A DNA stretch of 64,000 nt from sequence record ON529852.1; one strand, written 5' to 3'. The position numbers were made by a program, and so were the translations under genes. Below, in pieces: positions 7,984 to 54,910 of the stretch (positions are counted from its first letter, which is position 1; every line of letters starts with the position of its first letter). Under the pieces are notes generated by a model. That model was not told where the DNA came from and ran no database searches. It was given only the letters and a program-made list of their open reading frames with translations.

Positions 7984-8023
7984 GTGTTAATGTGACTGGC
8001 ACAGAGTGTCAAGTTTTACGGCA
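7984..8023 (-). promoter_or_regulatory. class B promoter TGCCGT-N5-TTGACA-N17-TAACAC
   Basis: one of five copies of TGCCGTMAWWMTTGACR. Confidence 0.75.
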
Positions 8024-8024
8024 C

Positions 8025-8495
8025 TCATTCGGCCTTGTTGATGCCCCAACGTTCGATGCGCGAGTTCAGCCCCGACACCGTCAGCCCCAGTTTTTTCGCC
8101 GCCTCCTTCTTGTTTGGCGCGGCGTCCAGGGCCGTCACGGTCTCCGAATAGAGGCGCTCATCCCGATCGCTACGGGTCAGGGTGTCCTCGATCCCGTAGC
8201 GGCGCAGGCGCGAGTTCAGGCCGGACACGGTCAACTTGAGCGCGCGCGCGGCTTCGACCCGCGTTCGGGCGCTCGCCAGGGCCGCCTCGGTCTTCTTGAT
8301 CATCTCCTGCTGGTCAGGCGTCGGGGTGAAGGCGATAGGCTGGGCGGCGTGCGACAGGTCCGGAGCCCGTTCGGCGATAATCTGACTGACCCGCATGCGT
8401 GAAATGCCGAAATGCCGCGCGGCATCCGCCGGGATGAACCCCTGACGCACATAGGCGACGACGGCGTCGCTGTCGACGGTGGAGGGACGGGCCAT
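8025..8495 (-). CDS. triple helix-turn-helix DNA-binding protein
   Basis: AARHFGISRMRVSQI plus two Fis-like repeats EAA..L.LTVSGLNSR..R.GI. Confidence 0.8.
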   Translation of the reverse strand: MARPSTVDSDAVVAYVRQGFIPADAARHFGISRMRVSQIIAERAPDLSHAAQPIAFTPTPDQQEMIKKTEAALASARTRVEAARALKLTVSGLNSRLRRYGIEDTLTRSDRDERLYSETVTALDAAPNKKEAAKKLGLTVSGLNSRIERWGINKAE

Positions 8496-8496
8496 A

Positions 8497-8835
8497 TTAG
8501 GTCTCCTGGAGCAGACGGCGGGCGTAGGCGCGCGCGTCTTCGTTAGTCGCCGGCAAGCCGGCGTATTCTTCGGCCGAGATCGGCGCGATGGTGATGATGG
8601 AGTCGGCGAACCCCGCCATGGTCTTGGGGGACCATTCGCGGTAGAGCCCGTCGGGGCTGTTGGCGACAGGTTGATAGCGCTCGGACGGCCGCGCATCGAT
8701 TGAGGCGTAACCGGCCTTGGACACCCTGGTCACCTGGGCGCGGCGCACCAGCATGACCTTGCCCCGGTTGCCGCCCCAGGCCCGGACCGAGGTCAACTTG
8801 ACGAAATCACCCTTCTTCAGCATGTGCGCGTCCAT
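8497..8835 (-). CDS. hypothetical protein
   Basis: ORF coupled to neighbours; GGAG RBS for downstream gene. Confidence 0.65.
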   Translation of the reverse strand: MDAHMLKKGDFVKLTSVRAWGGNRGKVMLVRRAQVTRVSKAGYASIDARPSERYQPVANSPDGLYREWSPKTMAGFADSIITIAPISAEEYAGLPATNEDARAYARRLLQET

Positions 8836-10256
8836 CAGATGAGGCTGCCCGGTTGGAACTCGTCGTAGACGGCGCGGGTGAGCACGGTTTCAGGTTTGCC
8901 GTCCATCTTGGACAGGGTGTGTTTTTTGATCGTCGCCTTGATCCGGTAATGCTTGCCGGCCTGCGGTCGTTGCTCGCCGGTCGCGAAATGGACGCAGCGG
9001 CTGCCGTCGTCGCCCAGGATCGCCACGACGGTCTTGGGTCCGAACTGGCTGGGGATCACGATGCAGCGCTCGATCCGTCCGGTGAAGGCGTAGCGGCCGC
9101 CTTCATCGCCCTTCAGATGCTTCGGCTCAGGGCGGGCCTGGGCGATCGCGGCGTCTTCCAGACGTTTCAGAGAGCGGCCGACAAACATGGCGACGCCGGC
9201 CAGGATGATGTTGTAGCGCTTGTTGCGCGCGTATTCGCATGACAGCGCGATGCGCAGGTTATCGCCGAAATCCCCAGACGCCTTCTCGACATAGTCGACC
9301 AGCGCCAGCAGATCGAGCGGCTCCTTGAGCGGATTCGCCTTGTGCCAATCGCGCGCCTCCTTGAAGCGACGGTCGTAGCGGGGGTTCGGATCGATCGCAC
9401 CGCGCAGGGCGAGGACGTCGTCGCGCAGGGCTTCACGAATGTCGCGACCATAGCCGCCGTAGCGGACGGCCGCCTGATAGACGTCGCGCACCAGGCCCTC
9501 CACCCAGAAATGGGTGGCGTGGGCGCCGCCCCAGGCGTCGCTGTCGTCCCGATCGCCGACGAGGGACGAGCGCACGGCTTCGCGCGCCAGGATGTCGTTG
9601 GCCTCCAGCCCCAGGAAGTCGCGCGAGCACTGGCGGCCGATCACCAGGCGCCGCCCGTCGGTGGTCTCCACCAGGAAGGAGGCGCGACGGTCGCGTTTGT
9701 GCCCGCAATGGTCGCAATCGCGCCAACGCGGCAGAAAGGGCTCAAGATCGGCAGGGTCAGCGCCGTTGAACGCGTGCCGGTAAACCTGGACGTTGTCCTC
9801 GGCCATTTCGAAGGCGCCGATCAACTTCGCGTTCTCGCCGGCGACGGCGGGCGCCTCGATGGTGATCAGGACCTGACGGATCATCAGGGGACGCCCCAGG
9901 CGATCGCGTCGGAAGCGGTTCTCGACGAAGGTTTCTTCGGTATGGACGATGTCGACCGTCTGGTTGTAGCGCTTCATGCGCTTATCCAGCTTGGCGACCG
10001 CCTTGACCACATCGGCCTCGGCGCCGTCGTCGCACGTCAGGACAAACCGCTGACGTCCGTCAGGGGCGCCCTCGACCAGGCAGACGCGGTGATGCCGAGC
10101 GGGTTCCGGCGGGTTCGCCCGGCGCTCGTCCTCGATCCAGGCGTCGACATAGGCCGGATCGTCGAACGGGTCCGCGCCGGCGGATTCGAACGCGGCCGCG
10201 ACGGTCTCGCCCTCGCGGTGCTCCAGTTCGGCTCTCCAGTCCTCGGCGTCGTACAT
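8835..10256 (-). CDS. conserved phage protein with CxxC motif and probable C-terminal OB fold
   Basis: CDHCGH..R...GRQC; C-terminal beta-rich GKHYRIKATIKKH; GAGGA RBS at ATG 10256. Confidence 0.75.
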   Translation of the reverse strand: MYDAEDWRAELEHREGETVAAAFESAGADPFDDPAYVDAWIEDERRANPPEPARHHRVCLVEGAPDGRQRFVLTCDDGAEADVVKAVAKLDKRMKRYNQTVDIVHTEETFVENRFRRDRLGRPLMIRQVLITIEAPAVAGENAKLIGAFEMAEDNVQVYRHAFNGADPADLEPFLPRWRDCDHCGHKRDRRASFLVETTDGRRLVIGRQCSRDFLGLEANDILAREAVRSSLVGDRDDSDAWGGAHATHFWVEGLVRDVYQAAVRYGGYGRDIREALRDDVLALRGAIDPNPRYDRRFKEARDWHKANPLKEPLDLLALVDYVEKASGDFGDNLRIALSCEYARNKRYNIILAGVAMFVGRSLKRLEDAAIAQARPEPKHLKGDEGGRYAFTGRIERCIVIPSQFGPKTVVAILGDDGSRCVHFATGEQRPQAGKHYRIKATIKKHTLSKMDGKPETVLTRAVYDEFQPGSLI

Positions 10257-10283
10257 GGCGTCCTCCTCGTGTCTGGGGAGGTG

Positions 10284-10310
10284 TGTAAAGGAACTAAATG
10301 CGGAAGTCAA
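10284..10310 (-). promoter_or_regulatory. class A promoter TTGACT-N11-TTCCTTTACA
   Basis: repeated motif. Confidence 0.8.
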
Positions 10311-10312
10311 CA

Positions 10313-11059
10313 CTAGCGGAGCACGCGATCCGCGTAGAGGCATTTGGCGTTGAACATCGACGCTGGCGCGCGCAAGGCTGACCCGCCGCGACTGTCGAAC
10401 ACGAACAGACCCGCTGAAGGGGCCTCCCCCGCGCCGCTGTAGAAACCGTAGCCGCAGGCGATGAAGTTAACGCCATCGACGGCCACCAGATACAGACGAG
10501 CGAACTCTACCTCTCGACCCGTTGCGCGGGTCACGGCGCGCGCCACCTGTTCCATCCGTTCCTCAGGCGATACGGACGATAGCGGCCCCCAGGAGAGACG
10601 TTGGCGCGTCGCGCCTTCGTTCGCATAGACAGAGGTGATGCGCGGGTTGGTCATGGAAGCGCCCCACCCGCCGACATCGGACGGCAGGGCGAACCATGGC
10701 GTATCCACGCCCCGACCGACCCGGACCAGAGTCTCGCGCACGCGCTCGTCGAGGAGGCAGGCGCGCGCCAAGTCCCGGTCCAGAAAGCGACAGCCGGCCT
10801 GCCCTTCTTGGATCAGTCGTATGACCCTAGCCTCTTCGCCAGGAAGCCAACCCCGCACCACGGGCGGGATGTCGACCAGACGTTCTACCATCAGATTGCG
10901 CGGCTCCAGCAAATAGGCGCGCACGTCAGGATCAGCGCGACAGGCGTCGGACAGGGCCGGCTCGGCGTACTCGCAGGTTTCGGGGTCGCCGGCGCGGGCG
11001 TCGGACGCCAGCAGACTGGCCCACAACCAGGCCAAGGCGATCGCGATGATGAGGCGCAT
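10313..11059 (-). CDS. secreted hypothetical protein, atypical codon usage
   Basis: signal peptide MRLIIAIALAWLWASLLA; several A/T-ending codons. Confidence 0.65.
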   Translation of the reverse strand: MRLIIAIALAWLWASLLASDARAGDPETCEYAEPALSDACRADPDVRAYLLEPRNLMVERLVDIPPVVRGWLPGEEARVIRLIQEGQAGCRFLDRDLARACLLDERVRETLVRVGRGVDTPWFALPSDVGGWGASMTNPRITSVYANEGATRQRLSWGPLSSVSPEERMEQVARAVTRATGREVEFARLYLVAVDGVNFIACGYGFYSGAGEAPSAGLFVFDSRGGSALRAPASMFNAKCLYADRVLR

Positions 11060-11068
11060 CCTGATCTC

Positions 11069-11296
11069 CTACAGCCGCGTGTGCTCGACGTCGCCGTTGG
11101 CGTGGAAGGTCCAGGCGTTGAGCCCGAACCATTCCGGATTGTCCGCGTCCTGTTTCTGATGCTCCACGGTGATCTCAGGCGCGCAGTTCACCGGCAGCTT
11201 GCGCTTGGCGTAGGCGAAGGCCAGACCCTTGCGCTGGAAGGGGTGGTCAGTATACCGCCCTTCCTCAGGACAGACGGTGACGACAAAACGCTCCAT
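11069..11296 (-). CDS. hypothetical protein
   Basis: coupled to alkB-like gene. Confidence 0.65.
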   Translation of the reverse strand: MERFVVTVCPEEGRYTDHPFQRKGLAFAYAKRKLPVNCAPEITVEHQKQDADNPEWFGLNAWTFHANGDVEHTRL

Positions 11297-11856
11297 CAGG
11301 CCGGCACCAGGCCCCGGAAGGTCAAGGAGATTCGCGGGCCGATGTCACGGCCTTCCACCTTGGGGATCGCGTGCAGATGGGTCTGCTGCATGCCGGGGCG
11401 CATGATCAGCAAAGAGCCCGATTCCAGGAACATGCGCTCGGGATGCGCGCCCTTCACGTTGCGCTTGAAGGCGATGTCGCGTCCTTCACCCAGGGTGATC
11501 ACGGCGATCGGGCGGTTATGATCGATCTTGGGATCGTCGTCGGCGTGCCAGCCCAGGCCGTCAGACCCGTTGTGGTAGAGGTTCAGGAAGCACCCCTCCA
11601 GACGCACGCCGGCCTCGACCTCGATCTGGTCGCGGCAGACGTCGATGAAGGGGTGGCTGGGGCGCGCCTCATAGGTCCGGCGCCCAGGCCCTTCACCATA
11701 GGTGTAATCGCGCTCGAAGGTGTTGGTCCAGTATTCCGAACGCGGCGCGGTCTCCCGGCGCTCCCAGGCCAGACCGTCGCGCAGCATGAGGAAGGCGGCG
11801 TCCCGGATGGGCTCGCTGATGAAATCATCGAAATACACCACGGGGGCGTCAGACAT
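11296..11856 (-). CDS. alkB: AlkB-family 2OG-Fe(II) dioxygenase
   Basis: NLYHNGSDGLGWHADD, HAIPK, RISLTFR. Confidence 0.88.
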   Translation of the reverse strand: MSDAPVVYFDDFISEPIRDAAFLMLRDGLAWERRETAPRSEYWTNTFERDYTYGEGPGRRTYEARPSHPFIDVCRDQIEVEAGVRLEGCFLNLYHNGSDGLGWHADDDPKIDHNRPIAVITLGEGRDIAFKRNVKGAHPERMFLESGSLLIMRPGMQQTHLHAIPKVEGRDIGPRISLTFRGLVPA

Positions 11857-11885
11857 GGGGACCTCCTAATGCAACTGAAGCGGGT

Positions 11886-11920
11886 GTCGTAGCGGGCGAG
11901 AGTTCCGTTTGTCAACACTC
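11886..11920 (-). promoter_or_regulatory. sigma70-like promoter GAGTGTTGACA-N18-TACGAC
   Basis: extended -35 shared with 18000, 18793, 48102. Confidence 0.7.
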
Positions 11921-11940
11921 TCGCGCCAGAGGGAAACTAC

Positions 11941-12993
11941 TTAGTCCGGCGCGTCATTGCCCGTAACGACGTCAGACCGGGGAGGGTTCAACGCCATCAG
12001 GACCGTTTTACCGATGCTCAAGGGGTCGACGCCGGACGCCAGGGCGTCGTGCAGGCGGGCGCCCAGGGCGCGCTCGCCCAGACGTTGCATGGCGAAGTCG
12101 ACATGGGCGTCGATCTCGCTCTTGGCGTTCTCGCTCATTTCGGTGATCGCCTCGTGGGCCTGTTCGGCCACATAGGGCATGTTGGCGGTGAACTCGCGCT
12201 CGGCCTTGCTCAACTTCTCCAGCACCTCGTTGAGGTCGCCCTTGCGCACGGGTCCGGCGCCCAGCAGAACTTCAAGCGCCTGCCGGGCCTGGGTGAGGCC
12301 CTCGGCCGCCGAGGACGCCTTCTTGGTGATGGCGGCCCGGAAGGTTTCCTCGTCGTGCTTGTGGCGCTCGGGAACGCGGGGCGTCATGAAGTCTCCGGTC
12401 TGGGGGTCGCGGTAGCGTCGCAGGGTGCAGGGCACGCTGCCGGTGTTGAACGACGACATCAGCCGCGCCCACTGGACCTCGCTCATCTCGATACGCACGA
12501 CGTTGCGGTTTTCAAGCACCCGGTCGCCGGCGTCGCGTTTGATCAGTTGGGCGGTGTTGATCTCCAGGGCGATCGCATGTCCCTGGGGGTAGTCGACCAT
12601 GAACAGGTCCGTATCGCCCGACACCCGGCCCACCGAGACCGCGCCGAAGGAGGCGTGTTCGATTTCGTAGCCGTGCAGGTCCGGATCGCGCACGTCGATC
12701 TCAATGATCTTGGAGGGATCGTCGATTTCGTCCCAACGCGACAGCAGACTGCCGCTATTGTTGCGCGCGACGAAGACCACGCGCGGCTCGGCGCCGATGA
12801 GGGCGTTGAGTTTGTCGTTGGCTGAAACCCCGCCGTAGTTCTGGAAGTCGTGGGGCTTGATGCCCAGGAGGCCACAGGCCTCCTTCTGGGTCGGGGCCGC
12901 GACGTAGCAGTGCGCCTGGTTGTGGTGCGGCGACACCGCTTTCAGACGCGGATCGGTCTTCATATACCAGTAGACGTGCAGGCGTTCGGTCAT
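11941..12993 (-). CDS. hypothetical protein
   Basis: GGAGGA RBS before ATG 12993, class A promoter upstream. Confidence 0.8.
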   Translation of the reverse strand: MTERLHVYWYMKTDPRLKAVSPHHNQAHCYVAAPTQKEACGLLGIKPHDFQNYGGVSANDKLNALIGAEPRVVFVARNNSGSLLSRWDEIDDPSKIIEIDVRDPDLHGYEIEHASFGAVSVGRVSGDTDLFMVDYPQGHAIALEINTAQLIKRDAGDRVLENRNVVRIEMSEVQWARLMSSFNTGSVPCTLRRYRDPQTGDFMTPRVPERHKHDEETFRAAITKKASSAAEGLTQARQALEVLLGAGPVRKGDLNEVLEKLSKAEREFTANMPYVAEQAHEAITEMSENAKSEIDAHVDFAMQRLGERALGARLHDALASGVDPLSIGKTVLMALNPPRSDVVTGNDAPD

Positions 12994-13025
12994 CGGGTCC
13001 TCCGGGGTGTCGTCGTCGTGATTTT

Positions 13026-13052
13026 TGTAAAGGAATGTTTTGCCGAGGTCAA
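13026..13052 (-). promoter_or_regulatory. class A promoter TTGACC-N11-TTCCTTTACA
   Basis: repeated motif. Confidence 0.8.
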
Positions 13053-14038: not shown

Positions 14039-14069
14039 GAAAGGGCTCCTTCCTGAATGGTGGGACGGC

Positions 14070-14096
14070 TGTAAAGGAACGATATTAGGTTGTCAA
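14070..14096 (-). promoter_or_regulatory. class A promoter TTGACA-N11-TTCCTTTACA
   Basis: repeated motif; divergent from cadherin-gene promoter. Confidence 0.8.
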
Positions 14097-14112
14097 TCAC
14101 AGGCGAACTGAT

Positions 14113-14152
14113 TGCCGTAATTATTGACACTGAGCATGGTTAACGCTATAAG
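14113..14152 (+). promoter_or_regulatory. class B promoter TGCCGTAATTATTGACA-N17-TATAAG
   Basis: one of five copies. Confidence 0.8.
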
Positions 14153-14213
14153 GAATGCCTCAAAATGCCGCGTTTTTGTCGTGGCTGACAGCCCTCCCAC
14201 CGGTACAAAAAAC

Positions 14214-17200
14214 ATGGCACCTGTCCGCACGAAGCGCATCGCGCTCGTCTCTACGCGCATCCCTAACTATCCGCATCGCAAGAAGGATGGAGGGGGATCA
14301 GGCGGCGGTTCGGGTTCCGGGCCTCAGGTCCATGACATCGTCTTTGACGGTCCCGCCCTGATCACCGAGGGCGCCGCCGCCGGCACCGTCGTGGCCGGCG
14401 TGTCCTCGCTGCCGCCGGAAGCCGAACTGACCCTGGTCAACGACGCCGGCGGGCGCTTCGCCCTGGAAGACGGCGTTCTGATCGCCGGTGCGATCCCGAC
14501 CGACTACGAGGCCGCGACCCAGCACACGGTGGTCATTCGCGGCGCGCTCGGCGCCAGCGCCCTGGACAAGCCCCTGGTCGTCTCGGTGGTCAATCTGGTG
14601 GAACTGGTCGACTTTGACCTGACCGGACTGACGGTGCGCGAAGACGCCGCTCAAGGCGCGGTCGTCGGCGTCCTGTCGTCTGATCCGACGGGCGCCGCCT
14701 TCACCCTCACCAATACCGCTGGCGGACGCTTCGCCCTGTCGGGTTCGAACGTGGTGCGCGGCGCGACCGCGCTCGATTATGAAGCCGCGACCAGCCACGA
14801 CATCACCATCAGCGCCGCCCTGGGCGGCGAGGTCATCAACAAGACCTTCACCATCCAGGTCACCGACGTCGACGAACTGACCAGCTTCGCCCTGTCGGCC
14901 AACACCATCGCCGAGAACTCTCCGGCCGGCACCGCCGTGGGCACGCTGTCGTCGGTCCCCGCCGGCGCCACGTTCACCCTGGTGAACAACGCCGGAAACC
15001 GGTTCGCGCTGACGGGCGGTTCCCAGATCGTCGCCGGGGCGGTCGCCACGGACTATGAGAGCGCCACCAGCCACCAGATTACGGCGCGCGCGACGCGGCT
15101 GGGCGAAACGATCGAGCAGAACTTCACGATCAACGTCACCAACGTCAACGAACTGACCAACATCACCCTGAGCGCGGCGACGGTGGTCGAAAACACCGGA
15201 CCGGGCGTCACGGTCGGCGCCCTGGCCTCGGTTCCGCCCGGCGCAACCTTCGCCCTGACGAACACCGCCGGCAACCGCTTCGCCGTCTCGGGCTCCAACC
15301 TGGTGACGGGCGCGGTCAGCACCAACTACGAAGCCGCGACCAGCCATAATGTGACGGTCGAGGCGACGCGCGGCGCCGACGTCATCACCCGCACCTTCCC
15401 CATCAGCGTGACCGACGTCGTCGAGCCGCTGTCCATCGACCTCGCCCCCGCCGCCATCGCCGAGAACTCGCCCCAGGGCGCCCTGGTCGGTACGCTGACT
15501 TCCGAGCCTGCCGGCGCGACCTACACGCTGACGGATTCGGCCGGCAGCCGCTTCGCCCTGTCGGGCGACACCGTCGTCGTCGGGACGGTCCTGACGGACT
15601 TCGAGACGGCGGCGAGCCATACGATCACGGTGGATGCGGAACTGGACGGCGTGGAAACCTCCCGCACCTTCACCATCACGGTGACGGATGTGGCGGAACT
15701 CACCAACATCGCCCTGTCGAACACCACTGTGGCCGAAAACATCGCCAGCGGCGCGGTGGTCGGCGCCTTGACGTCGACGCCGGGCGGCGCGACCTGGACC
15801 ATGGTGGACGGCGCTGGCGGCCGTTTCGCGATCACCGGCGGCAATGTCGTGCGCGGCGCGACGGCGCTGGATTACGAGGCGGCGACCAGCCACGACATCA
15901 TCGTGCGCGGCACGCGCGGCGGCGAGACCCTGGAGAAGACCTTCACGATCTCCGTCACCAACGTCGTCGAGATCAGCGACATCACCCTGTCGGCCAACAC
16001 GACCCCGGAAAACTCCGTGGCCCCTGCCGTGGTGGGAGCGCTGACGTCGACGCCGACGGGCGCTTCCTTCATCATGACCAACACCGCCGGAAACCGCTTC
16101 GCCCTGTCGGGGTCGAACGTGGTGCGCGGCGCGACGGCCCTGGACTACGAGAACGCCACTTCGCACGACGTGACCATCCGGGGCACCCGCCAGGGCGAGA
16201 CCTTCGACAAGACGTTCACGATCAACGTCACCAACGTCAACGAGATCACCGACATCACCCTGTCGCCGTCCAGCGCGGCGGAAAGCATCGCCCAGGGCGC
16301 GACCATCGGCGCCCTGGCCTCGGTCCCGGCCGGCGCCGCCTTCGCCCTGCTGGACACGGTCGGCGGGCGCTTCGACATCGTCGGCACCAACCTGGTGCGC
16401 GGCGCGACGGCGCTCAACTACGAAGACGCCACCTCGCACCCCGTTCAGGTCCAGGCGACCCTGGGACCGGACACCTTCAACAAGACGTTGACGGTGACGG
16501 TGACCAATGTCGCCGAACTGACGGCGATCAACCTGTCGGCGAACACGATCGCTGAGAACTCCGTGGCGGGCACCGTCGTGGGCGGCCTGACGTCGACCCC
16601 TGCCGGAGCGACCTTCACGATGACCGGCAACGCCGGCAACCGCTTCGCCCTGTCCGGCAACAACGTCGTCGCCGGATCGGTCTCGACCGATTATGAGGCC
16701 GCAACCAGCCACGAGGTGACGATCCAGGGCGCACGCGGCGGCGAGACCCTCAACCAGACCTTCACGATCAACGTGACCGACGTGGTGGAGACCGTGCCGC
16801 AGCCGGAAGAAAGCCGTCCGGCCCAGACCGACATCATGATCACCCAGGAATACGCCTACTCGGGAGCGCCCGACGGCGACCTCATCGGCGTCCTGCTGGC
16901 GATTCCGAAGACGAAGGCGGAGTATTCCGCCTATGTGTCCGGCGTGACCTACACCCTGCTCGACGACGCCGGCGGCCGCTTCAAGCTGGCGACGGGATCG
17001 TCCCATTCGCGTCAACTGCTGGCGGGACCGACGGCGACCAACGACGCCGTCGCCACCGAGCACTCCATCACCGTGCGCGCCGAATGGGGCGCCGGGGCCT
17101 ATACGCGCGATCAGACCTTCGTCATGACGGTCCGTCCCGCCGGATCGATGCGCGGCGGCACCAACCAGGTGCTGGCGGCGGGCACCGCCAACCCCACGGC

Positions 17201-17423
17201 CACGGCGAACGGGTCGTCGGGTACGGCCCCCTATACCCACGAGTGGTCGATGGAGGCCTCCGAAAACTACGCCATCCAGGCGGGCGCCTCCACCGCCGTC
17301 GTCACGTTGGGCTACACCGGCCCGACCCCCGGCTTCGGTTGGGGCGTCACGCGGGCGGTCACCTACGACAGCGCCGGAAAGCACGCCTGGTCGCGCTTCC
17401 TGGTCATCTTCTCGCCCAGCTAA
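14214..17423 (+). CDS. cadherin-like repeat protein (9 repeats + 1 degenerate, PKD-like C-terminus)
   Basis: ~91 aa repeats E.T.I.LS....EN...G..VG.L...GGRF......DYE.ATSH...TFTINVT; ATG at 14214 (listed TTG start is the -35 box). Confidence 0.9.
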   Translation: MAPVRTKRIALVSTRIPNYPHRKKDGGGSGGGSGSGPQVHDIVFDGPALITEGAAAGTVVAGVSSLPPEAELTLVNDAGGRFALEDGVLIAGAIPTDYEAATQHTVVIRGALGASALDKPLVVSVVNLVELVDFDLTGLTVREDAAQGAVVGVLSSDPTGAAFTLTNTAGGRFALSGSNVVRGATALDYEAATSHDITISAALGGEVINKTFTIQVTDVDELTSFALSANTIAENSPAGTAVGTLSSVPAGATFTLVNNAGNRFALTGGSQIVAGAVATDYESATSHQITARATRLGETIEQNFTINVTNVNELTNITLSAATVVENTGPGVTVGALASVPPGATFALTNTAGNRFAVSGSNLVTGAVSTNYEAATSHNVTVEATRGADVITRTFPISVTDVVEPLSIDLAPAAIAENSPQGALVGTLTSEPAGATYTLTDSAGSRFALSGDTVVVGTVLTDFETAASHTITVDAELDGVETSRTFTITVTDVAELTNIALSNTTVAENIASGAVVGALTSTPGGATWTMVDGAGGRFAITGGNVVRGATALDYEAATSHDIIVRGTRGGETLEKTFTISVTNVVEISDITLSANTTPENSVAPAVVGALTSTPTGASFIMTNTAGNRFALSGSNVVRGATALDYENATSHDVTIRGTRQGETFDKTFTINVTNVNEITDITLSPSSAAESIAQGATIGALASVPAGAAFALLDTVGGRFDIVGTNLVRGATALNYEDATSHPVQVQATLGPDTFNKTLTVTVTNVAELTAINLSANTIAENSVAGTVVGGLTSTPAGATFTMTGNAGNRFALSGNNVVAGSVSTDYEAATSHEVTIQGARGGETLNQTFTINVTDVVETVPQPEESRPAQTDIMITQEYAYSGAPDGDLIGVLLAIPKTKAEYSAYVSGVTYTLLDDAGGRFKLATGSSHSRQLLAGPTATNDAVATEHSITVRAEWGAGAYTRDQTFVMTVRPAGSMRGGTNQVLAAGTANPTATANGSSGTAPYTHEWSMEASENYAIQAGASTAVVTLGYTGPTPGFGWGVTRAVTYDSAGKHAWSRFLVIFSPS

Positions 17424-17425
17424 TC

Positions 17426-25646: not shown

Positions 25647-26264
25647 ATGAACGCCCACGTCAACTCCATCTACGCCTACGAGGTTCACGACCACAAGGGC
25701 ACCAAGGCGGCTGTCTTGGGAGCCCTATCGGCGGCGGGGTCACGCGGGCTTTGCTGCGAAGAACTCGAAGATCGCCTGGGTGACGCCCATAACACGATCT
25801 CGGCCGCCTGCACCCATCTGCGCAAAGGTTATGCGGGCGCCCCCTTGATCTGCTGGACGGGGCAGAAGGTGCGGACTCGGAGTGGACGCAGCGCCGGACG
25901 CATGCGCCTGGTTCTCGCCGGTGAAATCGTCGCCGCCGAGCCGGTGAAAAAGAGGCTGCCCCGGTCCGCCAGCAGTTCCAGCGTCTTCACCAACGGAAAC
26001 GCCAACTCTGCGGCGGCTGCTCGATCCATGACTGGGGCGGCGCAGGCGCAGGAGGTCAAGGTGTTGGACGCCTTGTTGATCAACCGCACCGCCGACCAGA
26101 TCGCCATGGTGACGGGACTTCGCCCGCAGTCCGTGACGGCGAGGCTGAGGGCTCTTAAGGCCAGGGGACTGGTGCGCGAGACCGGCGCCACCCGCATGAC
26201 GCGGAAGAATCGCCCGGCCGCCGTGCTGGAACGGGTGACGCCTATGCTGGGACTGACACACTGA
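25647..26264 (+). CDS. tandem winged-helix DNA-binding protein
   Basis: two wHTH-like units ending TGQKVRTRSGR and TGATRMTRKNR. Confidence 0.7.
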   Translation: MNAHVNSIYAYEVHDHKGTKAAVLGALSAAGSRGLCCEELEDRLGDAHNTISAACTHLRKGYAGAPLICWTGQKVRTRSGRSAGRMRLVLAGEIVAAEPVKKRLPRSASSSSVFTNGNANSAAAARSMTGAAQAQEVKVLDALLINRTADQIAMVTGLRPQSVTARLRALKARGLVRETGATRMTRKNRPAAVLERVTPMLGLTH

Positions 26265-34084: not shown

Positions 34085-34387
34085 ATGTACGCCATCATCA
34101 TGTCCGACGCCCGATCGATTGGTAAGAAGCCGGCGCTGAAACTGGGCTGGGTGACCAAGCGCCTGCCCGACGGCAGCTTGCGCGCCAACGTCGCGCCCCT
34201 CTCCACCTTGGGCAATCCGAAATGGTCCAAGACCGCGCGCTACGTGCGGGGCAACCAGGTCGCCCAGATGTTCGGCCCGAACGTCAAGCCGACCTTGGCC
34301 GACATCAAGGCCATCCGGGACCGGATGAAGCCCTACCAGCCTCGCGCCGGCGGATTCGACGAAATGGGGCACTACGGCGGCGTTTAA
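34085..34387 (+). CDS. basic hypothetical protein
   Basis: GGAGG RBS. Confidence 0.8.
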   Translation: MYAIIMSDARSIGKKPALKLGWVTKRLPDGSLRANVAPLSTLGNPKWSKTARYVRGNQVAQMFGPNVKPTLADIKAIRDRMKPYQPRAGGFDEMGHYGGV

Positions 34388-34469
34388 CTTGACGCCGTGA
34401 ATCCTGACAGTTAATGACGCTGATAACGGCAATCACGCCGTCTTCGTCATGCGCCGTTAACCATATTTG

Positions 34470-34485
34470 TTAACCGGTGGTTAAC
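34470..34485 (+). promoter_or_regulatory. CtrA-binding site TTAA-N7-TTAAC
   Basis: TTAACCGGTGGTTAAC; four more TTAA within 34384-34490. Confidence 0.75.
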
Positions 34486-34517
34486 CTTAATGGTCCGGCG
34501 CCCTCCAAGGATTCACT

Positions 34518-46166: not shown

Positions 46167-46169
46167 AAC

Positions 46170-46204: not shown

Positions 46205-46205
46205 C

Positions 46206-47402: not shown

Positions 47403-47403
47403 G

Positions 47404-48474: not shown

Positions 48475-48716
48475 TGGGCATGGCGACCGGATCGTCCGGC
48501 TCCAACACCATGCCGGACTGGGTCCATGTCTACGACACCGCCGTCAGCCACAATCAGCCCGTCGGCGACGACAAGCCCGCGCCCCCGCCGAAGCGGCGCA
48601 AGCGCGCCAAGGCCCGCCAGAAGACGGTGGAGCACCTCTACGCCGATCTGATCAAGGCGGGGATCGTGCGGATCGAACGCAAGAAGGGGCAGCCACCCCG
48701 GATCATCTGGCTCTGA
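48474..48716 (+). CDS. basic hypothetical protein
   Basis: TGATG coupled. Confidence 0.65.
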   Translation: MGMATGSSGSNTMPDWVHVYDTAVSHNQPVGDDKPAPPPKRRKRAKARQKTVEHLYADLIKAGIVRIERKKGQPPRIIWL

Positions 48717-48719
48717 TAG

Positions 48720-48757
48720 AAAAACCCCGTAGGCGTCAGCCCACGGGGTTTCTTTTT
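48720..48757. terminator. bidirectional intrinsic terminator
   Basis: AAAAACCCCGT...ACGGGGTTTCTTTTT. Confidence 0.85.
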
Positions 48758-48912
48758 GCGCCGACCTCCGACGTCGCGAACGCCTGGAGGCCGCCGAGGC
48801 CTGACTTTTCGACCGACTTTCACGGTCGGGTTGGTCAATCACGCCGGCCCACCTAACCCGATGGCCCCTGTTCATGAGGCGCGGCCTTGGCCCGTCGACT
48901 GACTGTACCGCA
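48720..48912 (-). ncRNA. candidate structured ncRNA (~190 nt)
   Basis: own promoter 48957-48918 and terminator; several GC-rich stems; no RBS-led ORF. Confidence 0.55.
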
Positions 48913-48917
48913 CGCCC

Positions 48918-48957
48918 ACCCTAGAGCGTGACCCGGTCAACGTCAAGATTTACGGCA
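48918..48957 (-). promoter_or_regulatory. class B promoter TGCCGTAAATCTTGACG-N17-TAGGGT
   Basis: one of five copies. Confidence 0.8.
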
Positions 48958-48969
48958 CTGTGAAACGCC

Positions 48970-49001
48970 AAAGGCCCCGGCGACGAGCGCCGGGGCCTTT
49001 T
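48970..49001. terminator. terminator hairpin downstream of primase gene
   Basis: AAAGGCCCCGGCG-ACGAG-CGCCGGGGCCTTT. Confidence 0.8.
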
Positions 49002-49047
49002 CTGATCCTGCCGTATTCCCACCCGGCAGGACCGCCCGCCGGTCCCC

Positions 49048-52000
49048 TTAGGCAGCGAGGGGATCGGGCTGAGGCTGTTCTTCGAGGTACTGATCCACCC
49101 GTTGCAGGAAGAACATCGGATCGCCTTCCTCCGACAGGCCCGAACGGACCAGATAGTCGAGGTTGTCGATGCGGAAGGCGCGGCCGTCCAGGTTGTGCAT
49201 CTTCTTCTGGAACATGCGCTTCTTCTGGTCGTCGTTGTTGCCTTCGATGATGTCCATCTCCATGCCGTAGGCGTGGTTGAACAGGTCGCCGGTGAGCACC
49301 TTGTTGAAGCCGTACTTCTTGATCCACTCCTTCACGAAGGCGCGGATCGCCGTCTCGTCCATATCGGCGATGGCGCTGGCGCGGTTGTCCAGGAAGCCTT
49401 CGATGCCGCAGGCCTGGAGCACGCCGCCGACCTTGCGCGACCAGTCCTCGAACGAGGCCCGCTTGCGCTCTTCGAACATCGGCTTCTCCAGGTCGATCCA
49501 ATACTGGATCATCGTCAGGATGTAGCCGACGATCTTGGAGCGGTTCGAGTTCAGGAAGTCGGTGAAGTCCTTGTGGCGGAACACCCGCGTCTGGATGTCG
49601 ACCGTCTTGCCGTTCAGACGCACCCAGACGATTCGGCGCTCCATTTCCGACAGCACGATCGGGTTGTTGCCGGTGCCGATCCAGTTGAACAGGTTCGGCC
49701 GGCTGACATTGGCCGTCTTGCCCAGCATGCGCCCGCCGATTTCCTGCGCCGTGATCGACTGGAGCAGGGCGCGGTTATTGAACTCCTTGACGTCGTCGAA
49801 GAACAGGTGAGAACGAGTCTCAATAATCGCCGACAGCAGCGACTTCTGCATCTCCTCCTCGTTCTGCGTATAACGCATCGGGGCGCTCTCCTGGCCGTCG
49901 AACAACAGCATCGGCAGCTTGCCCAACAGGGTGCCGCCGGTGCCGGGGGTCGGTTTGGAGACGAAGAAGACCGGCGTACAGCCGTTGATCATCCGCCGCA
50001 TGAACGGGGTGATGATCATCGCCAGGGCGTTGGCCTCGGACGGCTCGCGCCGCTCGTTGCCGTTCGTATCGTAGTCCAGGAAGGGGAAGTCGATCAGGAC
50101 CTCTTCACGCAGGAAGGCGACCGCCTCCTCCACCTCATCCCAGGTCGGCGACTGCGGCACCGCAACGGTGAAGTTGATGTTCGCCATCAGGATGTTGAGA
50201 TCGGGCTTGTAGCCCGGCGTCATCACCAGATCGCCGTCGGCGGTGAACAGGGGCGTGTAGATGATCTCCGGCGACTGCGGCAGTTCATTATAGCACTGCT
50301 GGTAGACGTATTCGCCGACCTCCTTGGGGATGGCCTCGCGCGTGCCGTCACCCTTCTCGGAGCGCCGCATGAAGGTCATGCGCTTGTTCATCTCCGAGCG
50401 CATCGCCGCCTCGTTCAGGACGTCGAAGGAAATGCGTCCCGTCTTGGCGTTGCGGTTCAGGCGCACGGGATCGGTCTGGACGCAGGAGAAGGTGGGCTCC
50501 TTGTCCTTCTTGTTGGTCATGGTCAGCGTGCGGAAGCAGGCGTCGAAAGCCTCGTCGAAGTTGTAGCTGCTCTCGTACTCGAACACCTCGCGGCCCTTCG
50601 GGTCCTTGATCGAGCCCTTTTCGTTCTTCGCGCGCGAAATCTCCGCGCGCGCCGACTTCAGCAGCTTGGTGACGTTGGGCTGAGAGAGTTTCAGCGCCTT
50701 CCTGATCTTGGCCTCGATCTGGATGCTGCGGCGCGTCGGCAGGTTGGCCTCGATCACCGCGCGCAGGCAGTCGTCGACATCTTCTTCCGAAGAATCCTCC
50801 GTCAGGCCGTCGACCAGCTTTTCGTAGACCTCGCGCGCGTCGTCCTCGGCCTTGATCTTCTCGCCTTCTTCCGACAGCCCTTCAGCGCCTTCCTCCAGGA
50901 GGGCGTTGTAGGTCGGGTCGTCGATGGTGTCGCGATCGAACCAGTCGTCCTTGAGCATCTTGCCCAGGAAATCGAGATTGGTGCGCTGCGAGCAGCTATC
51001 GTGCTGGCACTTGATCGTGAAGATTTCGCTCGGTCCGTCGCCGGCGTTGACCGCGAAACAGCCCTTGTCTTCAGGATTGCCCGGATCGGAGTGATCCTCG
51101 TCGAAGGGGCACTCGATGTCGATCTTGTGGGCGCCGTTGGTGCGGATGCGGTCCTCGGCGTGGTCCTTGATCAGGTCGACGATCTGGAAGCCGCCGGCCG
51201 CCTTGATCGACCAGCGCCCGAGATCACGCCCTTCCTCGGTCGTGGACTTGGACTTCGGCTTGGACTTGTCGGTGGCCTTGACCTCGTTCAGCACCAGGTC
51301 GAGCAGGGCGTCCCCGGTCGGAGCGTCGTCCGCGCCGCCCGAGGTCAGTTCCAGCGATTTCCAGTCCAGCAGGTCGCCGCCGACGATGCGGGCCTCGAAC
51401 GGCCGGTTGGCGACGTGGCGCGGGAAGTAGAACAGACGCGACGGGTCAACCGCCGACCGGTCGAGCGGCAGGTCGCCCAAGGCCTTCGCCAGCGCATGGC
51501 AGACCTCGCCCCACATCTTCATGCCTTCGTCGTGGGTCTTCGCCACGGCGGTGGGCACGAAGGGCTCCGTCAACGGCAGCACGATGCGGTGCTTGGGCAT
51601 CGGGATGTGGTCAAGCTGGACCATGAACCCTTCCGGGTCATGGACGTCGTCGACGTATTCGACCGTCTTGATGATCGATTCGTCCCAACGCATGGTGGGT
51701 TCTTCACGCAGGAAGCGCTCGATCGTCTGCTGGTTCACGCCCTCGTCGATGTCGTGCTTCTTGCACCACTTGGCGATGCGGTCCTTCAGCATCTTGGTCG
51801 AGGTCTTGGCGTGGCTGTGGGTGGTGTAGCGCACCGCCAGCTTGCCCAGCTTGCTCAGGGCCTCGTCGATCACGGCGCCCGAGACGCCCACGTCGATGTC
51901 GAGGCCGACGCCGTAGCAGGCCTTGACGGCGGCCTTGCGCCGCTGATTGCCGACGATCTCGGCCAGGACGAAGGCCAGGCCGTCCTTGTTCTTGTCTTCG

Positions 52001-52704
52001 CGGTGACGCGAGAGCATGTCGACGAAGGTCCACACCGGCATGGCCTTGGGCGTCCACTTGACGGATTCGCGGTTGGCGCCGATGGAGATGATCATCTCGG
52101 GGGCGTAACGCGGATCGTCAAGCTGGAACGGGCTCAGCAGCTTGGCGTCGTTGAGCGCGCCGAAGTCTTCCTCTTCCCACGGCAGGGCGTAGCCTTCCGT
52201 CTGCACCGCCGGGGCGTCGATCAGGCCTTCCGGCGCCGGAGGCGCATCCTCGGCGTAGACCTCGGCCAGTTGCGCGAAGGTGACATAGTGTTCGGGGTCG
52301 AGGTGGACCAGGTCCCAGCCGTTGGCGCCGGGCGTCGGCACCGGGTCGGTCAGGAAGCCCGCCATCGCCTCGGCGATCGCCGTCACTTCCGGCGTCGCTT
52401 GAACCGCCGCATCCAGGGCGTAGGCGCAGATCAGCAGGCCGTCCTTGAACAGGACCGCCGTGGGCTTGACGACGTCATCCTGCCACTGGTCGGGCTGGGC
52501 GTTTTCGGTAAAGGCGTAGAGGAACGGCACATCGCCGTTGGCGGTCACCGGGTCCAGATAGAGGGCCTCGGCTCCAGCGGCGGCGGCGGCCGCCTCCAGG
52601 GATTCAGGGGTGGTGATTTCTGCGGTGACGTCACCGTAGATCAGGCGAAACGCGTCTTCGGTTGCGCTGACCAGCGCCGACAGGAATTCGTTCAGGGCTG
52701 CCAT
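49048..52704 (-). CDS. archaeo-eukaryotic-type primase fused to Zn-binding and helicase-like domains
   Basis: LDID, YTTHSH, KHRIVLP, SRLFYFP; CPFDEDH..CQHDSC; KPTPGTGGT, FFDDV, GTGNN. Confidence 0.8.
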   Translation of the reverse strand: MAALNEFLSALVSATEDAFRLIYGDVTAEITTPESLEAAAAAAGAEALYLDPVTANGDVPFLYAFTENAQPDQWQDDVVKPTAVLFKDGLLICAYALDAAVQATPEVTAIAEAMAGFLTDPVPTPGANGWDLVHLDPEHYVTFAQLAEVYAEDAPPAPEGLIDAPAVQTEGYALPWEEEDFGALNDAKLLSPFQLDDPRYAPEMIISIGANRESVKWTPKAMPVWTFVDMLSRHREDKNKDGLAFVLAEIVGNQRRKAAVKACYGVGLDIDVGVSGAVIDEALSKLGKLAVRYTTHSHAKTSTKMLKDRIAKWCKKHDIDEGVNQQTIERFLREEPTMRWDESIIKTVEYVDDVHDPEGFMVQLDHIPMPKHRIVLPLTEPFVPTAVAKTHDEGMKMWGEVCHALAKALGDLPLDRSAVDPSRLFYFPRHVANRPFEARIVGGDLLDWKSLELTSGGADDAPTGDALLDLVLNEVKATDKSKPKSKSTTEEGRDLGRWSIKAAGGFQIVDLIKDHAEDRIRTNGAHKIDIECPFDEDHSDPGNPEDKGCFAVNAGDGPSEIFTIKCQHDSCSQRTNLDFLGKMLKDDWFDRDTIDDPTYNALLEEGAEGLSEEGEKIKAEDDAREVYEKLVDGLTEDSSEEDVDDCLRAVIEANLPTRRSIQIEAKIRKALKLSQPNVTKLLKSARAEISRAKNEKGSIKDPKGREVFEYESSYNFDEAFDACFRTLTMTNKKDKEPTFSCVQTDPVRLNRNAKTGRISFDVLNEAAMRSEMNKRMTFMRRSEKGDGTREAIPKEVGEYVYQQCYNELPQSPEIIYTPLFTADGDLVMTPGYKPDLNILMANINFTVAVPQSPTWDEVEEAVAFLREEVLIDFPFLDYDTNGNERREPSEANALAMIITPFMRRMINGCTPVFFVSKPTPGTGGTLLGKLPMLLFDGQESAPMRYTQNEEEMQKSLLSAIIETRSHLFFDDVKEFNNRALLQSITAQEIGGRMLGKTANVSRPNLFNWIGTGNNPIVLSEMERRIVWVRLNGKTVDIQTRVFRHKDFTDFLNSNRSKIVGYILTMIQYWIDLEKPMFEERKRASFEDWSRKVGGVLQACGIEGFLDNRASAIADMDETAIRAFVKEWIKKYGFNKVLTGDLFNHAYGMEMDIIEGNNDDQKKRMFQKKMHNLDGRAFRIDNLDYLVRSGLSEEGDPMFFLQRVDQYLEEQPQPDPLAA

Positions 52705-52780
52705 TCAAACTTCGGGGGCGGGGGTGAGCCGAGGGTGGGGCCTCGTGATGAAGCCGCACCCTCGTCTATCCCGCCTCGAT

Positions 52781-52812
52781 TGTCAAGATTGACGGCAGTG
52801 ATTGCCGTGAAT
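52781..52812 (-). promoter_or_regulatory. class B element upstream of primase, extended into an inverted repeat
   Basis: TGCCGTCAATCTTGACA; ATTGACGGCA-GTGAT-TGCCGTGAAT 52788-52812. Confidence 0.7.
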
Positions 52813-52814
52813 TC

Positions 52815-53489
52815 TCACCAGTTTGCGACGTTGACCAGATCGCGCTGATAGTCGCTGGGCTCGATGTAGGCAGCGGTGGTTTCCAGCCGCTTGTGCCCCA
52901 TCAGTTTCTGGACGTCCAGGATGGAGCACTTCTTCTGGTTCGCCATGCGGGCGCGCACGGTGCCGAAGGTGCGGCGGCCGCTGTGCGAGGTCGCCCCGTC
53001 CAGCGAGGCCTTGGCGTAGAGGCGGCGGAACCACTGCACCACGGCGTTCGGGGTCACCGAACCGGGCACGTAGTCGTTGGCGATGGTGGAGACACGCTTC
53101 TTGGCGCGGGTCAGTTTCACCGTGCCGTCAGCGGCCTTGGCCTTGGGCGGCATATAGTTGTGCAGGGCGTAAAAGACATATTCGTCTTCGGGGCGAGCCT
53201 TGCGCAGGCGTTGCAGCACCGAGGCCAGTTCCGGCTCGATCGGGATCAGACGCTCGACCGAACGCTTGCCGACGTCGCCCGTGATCGCCAGGGTCGAACG
53301 GACCTTGCCGCTGGCGTCGAGCACGTTGGTGCGCCAGCGCAGCTTGGCGATCTCCGAGGCGCGCAGGCCGGCGAAGAAGGACAGGCGCAGCGCCGCTTCG
53401 TCGCGCAGCGGGCTGTCGCTGGCGCGCGTGATCTTCAGGGCCGCCTTGAACTGTTGTCCGGTCAGGGTCTGGGCGCGCTTGGTAGCCAT
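52815..53489 (-). CDS. tyrosine recombinase, catalytic domain only
   Basis: GLRASEI, SHSGRR, MGH, TAAY. Confidence 0.9.
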   Translation of the reverse strand: MATKRAQTLTGQQFKAALKITRASDSPLRDEAALRLSFFAGLRASEIAKLRWRTNVLDASGKVRSTLAITGDVGKRSVERLIPIEPELASVLQRLRKARPEDEYVFYALHNYMPPKAKAADGTVKLTRAKKRVSTIANDYVPGSVTPNAVVQWFRRLYAKASLDGATSHSGRRTFGTVRARMANQKKCSILDVQKLMGHKRLETTAAYIEPSDYQRDLVNVANW

Positions 53490-53581
53490 GGGAAAGTTCC
53501 TCCGTTGATGTCGTCACGGAGTCACATAAAGAAGGTCGACGTGACTGTCAAGCGTCTGTCAACGATCTCACGCCAAAATCG

Positions 53582-53737
53582 TTAGATCGGCTTCTTGGCG
53601 CGGTTTTTGCCGGCGCGCGCGCCGCAGTGGCCGCACTTGGCCCCGGCGCGGACGAGCCGGGCGTCGCAGCGACACCAGAAGCTGCGTCCGCGCGGCTGCC
53701 GCGAGGCCTCGCGGTTGGTCAGCGGCGGGTCTTGCAC
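53582..53737 (-). CDS. 51 aa zinc-ribbon microprotein (not in ORF track)
   Basis: MQDPPLTNREASRQPRGRSFWCRCDARLVRAGAKCGHCG... Confidence 0.65.
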   Translation of the reverse strand: MQDPPLTNREASRQPRGRSFWCRCDARLVRAGAKCGHCGARAGKNRAKKPI

Positions 53738-53738
53738 A

Positions 53739-54122
53739 TCAGGCGGGATAGCGGCGGCCGGCGTGGACGCCGTCCTGCGTGGTGGTCGGCGCCGGCTCCA
53801 CGCCGGTCTTGCCGTCCATGAACCGCGCGCGATGCGACGCCTTGGCGCCGGCCAAGGCCTTCGCCAGCAGGTCGCGGTCTTCGCCGATCGCCGTCTTGAA
53901 CGCCGCCTCGAAGCGGTCCATGGCGACGTCCAGGTCGACGTCCATCTTCACCTGGTAGATCGGCACGTCCTCATGGACGAACTGGGTCCAGCGCGTTTGG
54001 CGTCGGCCCTGGCTGTCGTAGCCCGGCTTGATGATGTGGAAGGTCTCTCCGCCCATGACGAAGGCGCCGATCTTGTTGGCCTTGAGCGCCCCGGCGTAGA
54101 GGGCGTGCGTTTGACGGCTCAA
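53739..54122 (-). CDS. hypothetical protein
   Basis: coupled ORF, phage-like codons. Confidence 0.7.
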   Translation of the reverse strand: MSRQTHALYAGALKANKIGAFVMGGETFHIIKPGYDSQGRRQTRWTQFVHEDVPIYQVKMDVDLDVAMDRFEAAFKTAIGEDRDLLAKALAGAKASHRARFMDGKTGVEPAPTTTQDGVHAGRRYPA

Positions 54123-54562
54123 TGGACCGCTCGGCTGTCCGGCAGGAGCACGCCGTGCACGCGCTTGCCGTATTCGCGATTGAAGGTGCGGTTCCAGTAT
54201 TCCGCCGCCGCGTGATTCGACCAGGCTTCCGTGGTCGTCAGTTCGGGGTTCTCATCCAGCAGGCGGGCGAAGAACAGCGTGCGCAGGTAGGAGAAGTAGA
54301 GCCCCGCGCTGATCAGGCTCAGGTCGTCGGACAGTTGCCAGTCGTCGAGCGGCAGGGGCAGGTCGAGATGGAAGTGATCCGGGTGCAGCCGCAGGGCCTC
54401 GGCGATGTAGGCCACCTTGTCCTTGTTGCTGATGCGGGACTGGAAGGCCTCGTCGGGAGAATCATCGCTCAGGACGGCGGCGTGGAGTTTGTCGTACTTG
54501 TGCCCGTAGCTGGGGACTCGCTGGGGTCCGTCACCGTCACCGTGATTCCGTGGATTTCGCAT
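54119..54562 (-). CDS. hypothetical protein
   Basis: GAGGA RBS. Confidence 0.75.
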   Translation of the reverse strand: MRNPRNHGDGDGPQRVPSYGHKYDKLHAAVLSDDSPDEAFQSRISNKDKVAYIAEALRLHPDHFHLDLPLPLDDWQLSDDLSLISAGLYFSYLRTLFFARLLDENPELTTTEAWSNHAAAEYWNRTFNREYGKRVHGVLLPDSRAVH

Positions 54563-54744
54563 GACTTCCTCGCGTACCAGACAGGCCGCGACGCATCGTC
54601 GGGGCCGAAGATTTCGACAAACTCATTCCGGGCTGCGCGCTCTTGGCAGATGCAGCCTTCCACACCACGCTGGGGGAGTTCGGGATGATGAGGAAAACGC
54701 CCGCGCACCTTGGCGGGGGTAGTTTCCTGCGTGATGTTTCGCAT
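54469..54744 (-). CDS. hypothetical protein, possibly leaderless
   Basis: ATG sits 7 nt after -10 CAGAAT; overlaps next ORF by 94 nt. Confidence 0.45.
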   Translation of the reverse strand: MRNITQETTPAKVRGRFPHHPELPQRGVEGCICQERAARNEFVEIFGPDDASRPVWYARKSCEIHGITVTVTDPSESPATGTSTTNSTPPS

Positions 54745-54750
54745 TCAGTA

Positions 54751-54790
54751 ATTCTGACTGAAATCGTCCCGATCGTCAAGAATTACGGCA
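54751..54790 (-). promoter_or_regulatory. class B promoter TGCCGTAATTCTTGACG-N17-CAGAAT
   Basis: one of five copies; divergent from rIIA promoter TTGACA 54820. Confidence 0.75.
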
Positions 54791-54910
54791 TAGTTCGGTG
54801 CTCAGGTGGCGTTTATGCGTTGACAGTCGGCGTCCACAAGGCCTATGCCGTTAATACCGTCATCGCCTACCGGAGTTCCCGCCTTGCGCTACGCCTACAA
54901 GCCCGACCAC

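Follow-up and report, generated by a model that had tools for sequence, protein, structure and literature searches.

Is a short word that recurs just upstream of the -35 element part of the promoter itself, or is it the target of a separate protein? The question is raised by a 64,000-nucleotide (nt) stretch of DNA, bases 124001-188000 of record ON529852.1 (hereafter the window), in which the hexamer TGCCGT, here called the box, is found five times in front of TTGAC. A 12-kb piece of the window, at 100% identity, placed it in Brevundimonas phage vB_BpoS-Kabachok, a phiCbK-like jumbo phage of the Dolichocephalovirinae with a circularly permuted genome of 356 kb and Brevundimonas pondensis LVF1 as host. 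The nearest relatives of Kabachok are Papperlapapp and Domovoi (97% identical), followed at 86-87% by Bambus and Marchewka; two other phages of LVF1, Kikimora and Gurke, align over short parts of the query only, with ~72-76% identity. This work indicated that the box, judged by its distribution, is the mark of the promoters of non-early core genes, which form the main promoter class of the phage. The finding of the same layout in the model phage phiCbK and other relatives, each with a box of its own, suggests an undescribed regulator made by the phages.

Five Promoters of One Design

The window contains exactly five copies of the motif TGCCGT-N5-TTGAC (Table 1), where 0.04 copies are expected by chance according to shuffled sequences, and none of 100 shuffles reached five. 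A search for the full 17-mer TGCCGTMAWWMTTGACR with up to two mismatches returned the identical five sites only. All of them lie between annotated genes, at the places named by a first-pass annotation made from the sequence, and each aims at a gene or RNA on the same strand. That annotation had also correctly noticed that the stop codon of the gene for a triple helix-turn-helix (HTH) protein (8025-8027) adjoins site 1.

These sites, here termed class B, share a single layout, with TGCCGT at -46 to -41, AAWTC at -40 to -36, TTGACR as the -35 element, a 17-nt spacer and a weak -10 element whose second base is an invariant A. The -35 hexamer is TTGACA or TTGACG at all five sites and, together with the -10 hexamers read at 17-nt spacing, has the form expected of sigma-70 promoters. 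In a genome-wide alignment, the ~16 strict copies agree only over the 17-mer and over one invariant A located 18 nt downstream, which at this spacing is position 2 of the -10 hexamer. In every copy the box stands exactly 5 bp upstream of the -35 element, the geometry of a class II activator site. The CtrA box TTAA-N7-TTAA is found at none of the five sites. No sigma-70 region 2 gene and no phage sigma factor were detectable in Kabachok, so that the host RpoD is likely to be the sigma factor in use.

Table 1. Promoters and associated elements in the window (positions of the window; all sequences read on the strand given).
Feature	Span	Strand	Copy of TGCCGT-N5-TTGAC	Elements	Predicted product or target
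Class B promoter 1	7984..8023	-	8023-8008	box TGCCGT 8023-8018; AAAAC; -35 TTGACA 8012-8007; -10 TAACAC 7989-7984; start ~7977	KABACHOK_02580, BCS1-like AAA+ protein (BCS1_N + AAA ATPase), 6709-7950, start 7950
Class B promoter 2	14113..14152	+	14113-14128	box 14113-14118; AATTA; -35 TTGACA 14124-14129; -10 TATAAG 14147-14152	KABACHOK_02670, 1069-aa cadherin-like protein, 14214-17423
Class B promoter 3	48918..48957	-	48957-48942	box 48957-48952; AAATC; -35 TTGACG 48946-48941; -10 TAGGGT 48923-48918	small RNA
Class B promoter 4	52758..52808	-	52797-52782	ACGGCA 52808-52803; ATCAC; TGCCGT 52797-52792; CAATC; -35 TTGACA 52786-52781; -10 GAGGGT 52763-52758	KABACHOK_03250, 1218-aa primase/helicase-like protein (PHROG matches), 49048-52704, start 52704
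Class B promoter 5	54751..54790	-	54790-54775	box 54790-54785; AATTC; -35 TTGACG 54779-54774; -10 CAGAAT 54756-54751	~180-nt leader, then KABACHOK_03280 (start 54562), 03270 and a tyrosine recombinase
Structured stand-alone small RNA	48722-48911	-		~185 nt, downstream of promoter 3	predicted product of promoter 3
Class-B-like flotillin promoter and palindrome	34378..34442	+		CGGCGT-TTAAC-TTGACG; -10 TAATGA; then palindrome 34426-34442	flotillin gene

Selection on the Box and Its Change Between Lineages

Comparison with Bambus over 20 promoters gave complete identity of the -35 and -10 hexamers (120/120 positions each), with 113/120 in the box and 96/100 in the A/T pentamer, against 0.82 in the 17-nt spacer and 0.86 in the 30 nt upstream; promoter 1 is identical in the two phages. 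As the core elements are fully kept and the flanks are not, the five sites can be regarded, on comparative grounds, as real sigma-70-type promoters whose box is under a constraint of its own. A different picture emerged from the orthologous promoters of Kikimora, which grows on the same host: identity to Kabachok was 0.94 in the -35 element and 0.83 in the -10 element, and 0.52 in the box, i.e. the level of neutral spacer.

The layout is present in all Dolichocephalovirinae examined, with an A/T-rich stretch at -40 to -37 common to all lineages, and each lineage has its own uniform box. It reads TGTCGT-GAATC-TTGACA in phiCbK, CcrRogue and CcrBL10 (~15-20 copies each, the phiCbK word TGTCGTGAATCTTGACA having about 20), TGCCAG-GAATC in CcrColossus and CcrPW, TGACGC/T-AWTTC in CcrSC, CGTCGT-GAATC in Bajun, a looser TGTTGT-AAWTC in Kikimora and Gurke, and TGCCGT-AAATC, plus three TGCCAG, in Kabachok and Bambus. 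The single strain Caulobacter vibrioides CB15 is thus host to phages with three boxes (TGTCGT, TGCCAG and TGACGC), and B. pondensis LVF1 to phages with two. Boxes that are uniform inside each genome and differ from lineage to lineage are what would be expected from co-evolution with a phage-encoded reader. The first-pass argument that a box at fixed distance from the -35 element betrays a regulator appears reasonable in this light, since the promoters are of sigma-70 type, the box is selected and the comparative data favour a phage-encoded factor.

The GAATC spacer is a CcrM (GANTC) methylation site in phiCbK (JX100813, e.g. 30464, 78365 and 94018), Bajun, CcrColossus, CcrPW, CcrRogue and CcrBL10. 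In Kabachok, Bambus, Kikimora, Gurke and CcrSC the spacer is mostly not GANTC (AAATC or AWTTC), with three GATTC in Gurke. Host GcrA was considered as the reader and rejected, because Kabachok spacers are not GANTC and the phiCbK context TGAATCT, read on the other strand as AGATTCA, is the lowest-ranked host GcrA site (PMC4647560). The phages themselves encode GcrA-domain proteins (in Kabachok at record positions 114022-114237).

The Main Promoter Class of the Phage

With up to one mismatch, the motif has 51 copies genome-wide, compared with 9 for its reversed control, and the class amounts to ~16 strict and 6 relaxed promoters. When 48 promoter-like sites of predicted non-coding DNA were compared with the box, the matches were bimodal, ten of them reaching 6/6. 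The units headed by strict class B promoters are the terminase operon (record 7019), the portal gene, two tail units and a transfer RNA (tRNA) array, and in the window those of the BCS1-like ATPase, the cadherin-like protein, the small RNA, the primase/helicase-like protein and 03280 with the recombinase. Further units carry RNA ligase and helicase, ribonucleotide reductase, an exonuclease that follows closely on the DNA polymerase gene, and the DNA methylase with which the replication module begins. The lysis cassette, the tail tube and units of the head/structural region have relaxed boxes, of the form TGCC(N)(N) or TGCT(N)(N). The first-pass annotation had seen a regulon linking four genes of the window; what was found instead is the main class, which extends to terminase, portal, tail, lysis, ribonucleotide reductase, methylase and tRNA units. 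Its expectation that the class would head replication and late-type genes was borne out across the genome, and the proposed flip away from accessory genes found no support.

The lysis and late structural promoters carry TGCCAG, TGCCTG, TGCCAA or TGCTGG (record 225722-225750, 260504, 264715, 292394, 297161 and 307249). TGCCAG is the box of the CcrColossus lineage, and the variant late boxes may point to another subclass or to another protein that reads them.

The early region, 40 kb of small genes at 317-356 kb, has another class of promoters, with GTTAAC-N5-GTTAAC, a CtrA-type TTAA-N7-TTAA, and a -10 element like GCTAGAAC. CtrA-type boxes gave 132 hits with both strands counted, or ~65 palindromic boxes, nearly all in this region, the sole copy in the window lying at ~34465-34490. 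TTAAC-N6-TTAAC has 82-85 hits in Kabachok and Bambus and 4 in Kikimora. GTTAAGGTTAAC palindromes and catGGTTAAC (SciP-like) words are also seen upstream of the early promoters.

Alphaproteobacteria do not in general carry the strict motif. In 301 sampled genomes from the class of an alphaproteobacterial metagenome-assembled genome (MAG), it was hit once each in two and was absent from 299. A motif scan of genome contigs gave scattered chance matches, none in Brevundimonas among the matches listed, and a scan of IMG/VR gave single chance matches only. A MAG contig with four motif copies was rejected as a coding repeat.

Inverted Half-Sites

An inverted copy of the box, in the form ACGNCN-N5-box, is found at exactly N5 upstream in 12 of 28 promoters of Bajun, 3 of 19 of phiCbK and 3 of 17 of Kabachok, when reversed, direct and complement controls gave 0-2 at any one spacing. 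Dimeric HTH proteins usually have operators of this form, a 6-N5-6 inverted repeat. Site 4 of the window is one of the three Kabachok cases and bears the full operator-like palindrome ACGGCA-ATCAC-TGCCGT, which explains the ACGGCAATCAC reported at first pass. The word TGTCGTGAATCTTGACA of phiCbK forms an imperfect palindrome on its own (TGTC..GA-A-TC..GACA, 6/8 pairs). The dyad symmetry of the 17-mer indeed reaches into the -35 element in phiCbK and Bajun, and is poor in Kabachok (4/8) and CcrSC (3/8).

The first-pass annotation had described an extension of the box to ACGGCAATCA(C) at three places. All three copies exist, and they are three different things rather than one extended element: that at 14118-14109 is the box of site 2 read on the opposite strand, that at 52808-52798 is the genuine inverted half-site that precedes site 4 by 5 bp, and the third is part of a separate palindrome, ACGGCA-ATCA-CGCCGT, with a 4-bp spacer (34426-34442, +), located where the flotillin transcript is predicted to start. 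The position of this palindrome is of the repressor type.

Candidate Reader Proteins

Of the candidates put forward at first pass, two are excluded or unlikely. The tandem winged-HTH protein KABACHOK_02790 (25647-26264, +) was excluded: Bambus has no homologue and keeps the box, so that this protein cannot be the reader. It has no homologue in Kikimora or phiCbK either and seems to be a recent accessory gene. The triple-HTH protein KABACHOK_02590 (8025-8495) is unlikely, as its Kikimora homologue is 50% identical and has identical recognition helices despite a different box; no convincing homologue was found in CcrSC, phiCbK or Bajun, and CcrSC and phiCbK do have the layout. Of the Xre type, the window has a single match, KABACHOK_03210, and this match is weak. 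The core gene KABACHOK_03220 is labelled as a middle transcription regulatory protein in GenBank; its sole PHROG is of unknown function, neither Pfam nor the PDB gave a match, and its single-sequence fold had a predicted local distance difference test score (pLDDT) of 48.

The best candidate lies outside the window. KABACHOK_03580 (record 199459-200238), a core cI/C2-like protein, has homologues in 11 of 11 phages compared. It gives a Pfam match to HTH_3 and, when compared as a profile, matches the DNA-binding domains of P22 C2 and of the 434 repressor and Cro (E = 8e-6). By eye, in the alignment, its C-terminal part is S24-like and lacks the catalytic serine of the GDSM motif; Pfam did not detect this domain. 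The recognition helix reads SRSAYCMYE in Kabachok, Bambus, CcrColossus and CcrPW, whose boxes start with TGCC, SRSGYCMYE in Kikimora and Gurke, ARTAYIMYE in the phiCbK group, SRPAYNMYE in Bajun and ARAAYSQYE in CcrSC. Such a distribution would be in keeping with a protein that reads the box, although relatedness of the phages confounds the comparison and box positions 5-6 are left unexplained by it. We regard the identification of KABACHOK_03580 as the reader as rather doubtful.

Proposed Mechanism and Alternatives

The explanation that we favour, with a probability of about 0.5, is that the box is the promoter-proximal half-site for a phage-encoded dimeric HTH regulator, which would help the host sigma-73 (RpoD) polymerase at non-early promoters. 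The main sigma factor of the host would read the five promoters, and the full operator would be ACGGCA-N5-TGCCGT. The proximal subunit of the dimer would occupy -46 to -41, beside sigma region 4 and separated from the downstream -35 element by one helical turn, where it may assist initiation by RNA polymerase at promoters with a weak -10 element. Activation is favoured because the -10 elements are weak and because the box leaves the core elements uncovered. Together with early promoters dependent on host CtrA, the box class would constitute a two-tier programme.

Several observations weigh against this explanation. Classic activator-dependent promoters have poor -35 elements, as is expected at class II sites, whereas class B promoters have the consensus TTGACR and it is the -10 element that is weak instead. 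Most promoters of Kabachok carry a single 6-bp half-site alone. Concerning KABACHOK_03580, Kabachok and CcrColossus have the same helix SRSAYCMYE, yet their boxes differ at positions 5-6, and the helices of Kabachok and Kikimora are one residue apart though the boxes differ. RNA-labelled metavirome runs yielded only scattered low-depth contigs. Moreover, replication genes are early and structural genes middle to late in phiCbK (PMC10688885); the 17-mer heads both kinds, and a box borne by both early replication genes and later structural genes cannot alone set their timing.

A protein of the same kind may also act with the opposite sign, the 17-mer being the operator of a phage repressor whose dimer, lying over the box and the -35 element, would shut the promoters, e.g. 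to delay expression or turn it off. This is the main rival and it has some support, in line with the membership of KABACHOK_03580 in the cI/C2 repressor family, the symmetry that extends into the -35 element in phiCbK and Bajun, the palindrome at the predicted flotillin transcript start and the consensus -35 element, which suggests that the polymerase binds unaided. We nevertheless consider it unlikely, given that symmetry with the -35 half is weak in Kabachok and CcrSC, that the second half-site, where present, lies upstream of the box and away from the core promoter, and that weak -10 elements are in keeping with promoters that need stimulation. An extra factor may be dispensed with altogether if the box and AAWTC form an upstream element for the host polymerase (alpha C-terminal domain or sigma), as the fixed distance to the -35 element, its consensus sequence and the A/T-rich -40 to -37 positions of all lineages would allow. 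This is rather improbable: only AAWTC is A/T-rich, the box is G+C-rich, and its inverted copy at exactly N5 has no UP-type role. In addition, phages of one host strain have different, internally uniform boxes, and the box identity of Kabachok and Kikimora on their common host is at the neutral level.

An element for the host polymerase, like a host factor, would indeed give one box per host, so that the lineage boxes disfavour both. Exploitation by the phages of the site of a host transcription factor has a precedent in the same genome, the CtrA-box promoters of the early region, and host XRE factors affect the yield of phiCbK (PMC10688885). With three boxes on CB15, two on LVF1 and the rarity of the strict motif in the sampled genomes, we judge it quite improbable. 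The box may, lastly, be devoid of function and carried along as promoters spread by duplication or gene conversion. Promoter cassettes are known to spread in T4-type phages, and the early region of Kabachok has a cassette-like look. Paralogous class B promoters, however, share only the 17-mer and the A of the -10 element, those of Kabachok and Kikimora are orthologous in position with boxes changed in concert, and within the clade the box is better kept than its flanks, which leaves very little room for this explanation.

Comparison With Known Systems

The assisting regulator that we favour would have counterparts in well-known phages. At lambda PRM, cI bound to an operator whose centre is near -42 exerts positive control by touching sigma region 4. 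The proposed dimeric HTH protein would likewise abut the -35 element from upstream, and KABACHOK_03580 combines a C2/434-type HTH with an S24-like C-terminal domain (by eye), in line with lambda cI, P22 C2 and 434 cI. Unlike the lambda system, Kabachok is a lytic jumbo phage with ~20 target promoters instead of one, mostly single half-sites and a consensus -35 element, and the S24-like domain of 03580, as read from the alignment, is without the usual serine of GDSM. Mor and C of phage Mu are phage-encoded dimers acting at sites centred near -43.5, which adjoin the -35 element from upstream or overlap it, in middle and late promoters of the host sigma-70. The Kabachok box also has its centre at -43.5 and its promoters head non-early genes; by contrast, Mu promoters lack a good -35 element and Mu sites are full dyads. 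No match to the Mor family (PF08765) was obtained among the eight window proteins scanned against Pfam. In T4, as here, a phage-specific box defines a promoter class that retains the -10 element of the host sigma-70, but the MotA box of the MotA/AsiA system replaces the -35 element at -30, whereas Kabachok has an intact -35 element, with the box further upstream at -46 to -41. The extended consensus of T4 and T5 early promoters likewise includes conserved positions upstream of the -35 element beyond the host consensus; their UP-like elements are A/T-rich and host-determined, while the Kabachok-type box is G+C-rich and phage-specific.

Other Features of the Window and the Genome

Promoter 3 lies directly downstream of the terminator of KABACHOK_03250 and has no coding target. 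The RNA predicted downstream of it ends in a 13-bp hairpin with a U run, a strong two-way terminator, and folds with z = -3.9. The minus-strand frame that overlaps it is not coding, its G+C content at third codon positions (GC3) being 0.73 against 0.92 in the adjacent plus-strand genes. No Rfam match and no tRNA match were obtained for 48722-48911, and the label of non-coding RNA given at first pass seems reasonable.

Promoter 5 is back to back with the rIIA promoter, which is without a box. In its leader, at ~54690-54715 (-), a short G+C hairpin is followed by TTTT and may be an attenuator. Outside the five promoters, intergenic TGCCGT or ACGGCA occurs 7 times in the window for ~3 expected, a weak excess. 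The other TTGAC promoters of the window (rtcB, tel/ter, rIIA and KABACHOK_03220) have no box; the hexamers noted earlier at rtcB (24356), rIIA (54846) and tel/ter (18800) exist, and the repression proposed for them, like the flip from accessory genes, rests on single hexamers of weak significance.

Elsewhere in the genome, the tape-measure gene has a 10-bp hairpin, GGGTGCCGTG-ATT-CACGGCGCCC, at its 3' end (record 250113-250135). The hairpin is kept in Kikimora by changes on both arms (GGGCGTCGTC-AAT-GACGACGCCC); it may serve to end or stabilize an RNA, or may track the box of each phage.

Implications for phiCbK-Like Phages

Our literature searches found no paper naming this motif or the promoters of these phages, and on the timing of phiCbK-like phage genes nothing is known to have been published beyond RNA sequencing clusters. 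An exact 17-base promoter word can now be given for each lineage, together with a short list of candidates for the protein that reads it. TGTCGT, TGCCAG and TGACGC provide, within one host strain, a natural series of specificity swaps, and the regulatory logic of phiCbK becomes directly testable with existing genetics and the public time course GSE241057. These words also offer portable, phage-specific promoters for high-GC Alphaproteobacteria.

More speculatively, and we regard this as doubtful as a whole, all Dolichocephalovirinae may run their non-early genes from one type of promoter, with a non-cleavable cI-like core protein that reads, one turn upstream of the -35 element, ~20 half-sites per genome with which it has co-evolved, and with GAATC allowing the output of phiCbK, Bajun and CcrColossus to sense the state of methylation or replication of the phage DNA. 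If true, this system and the host-CtrA promoters of the early genes would between them form a complete temporal circuit of a kind as yet undescribed.

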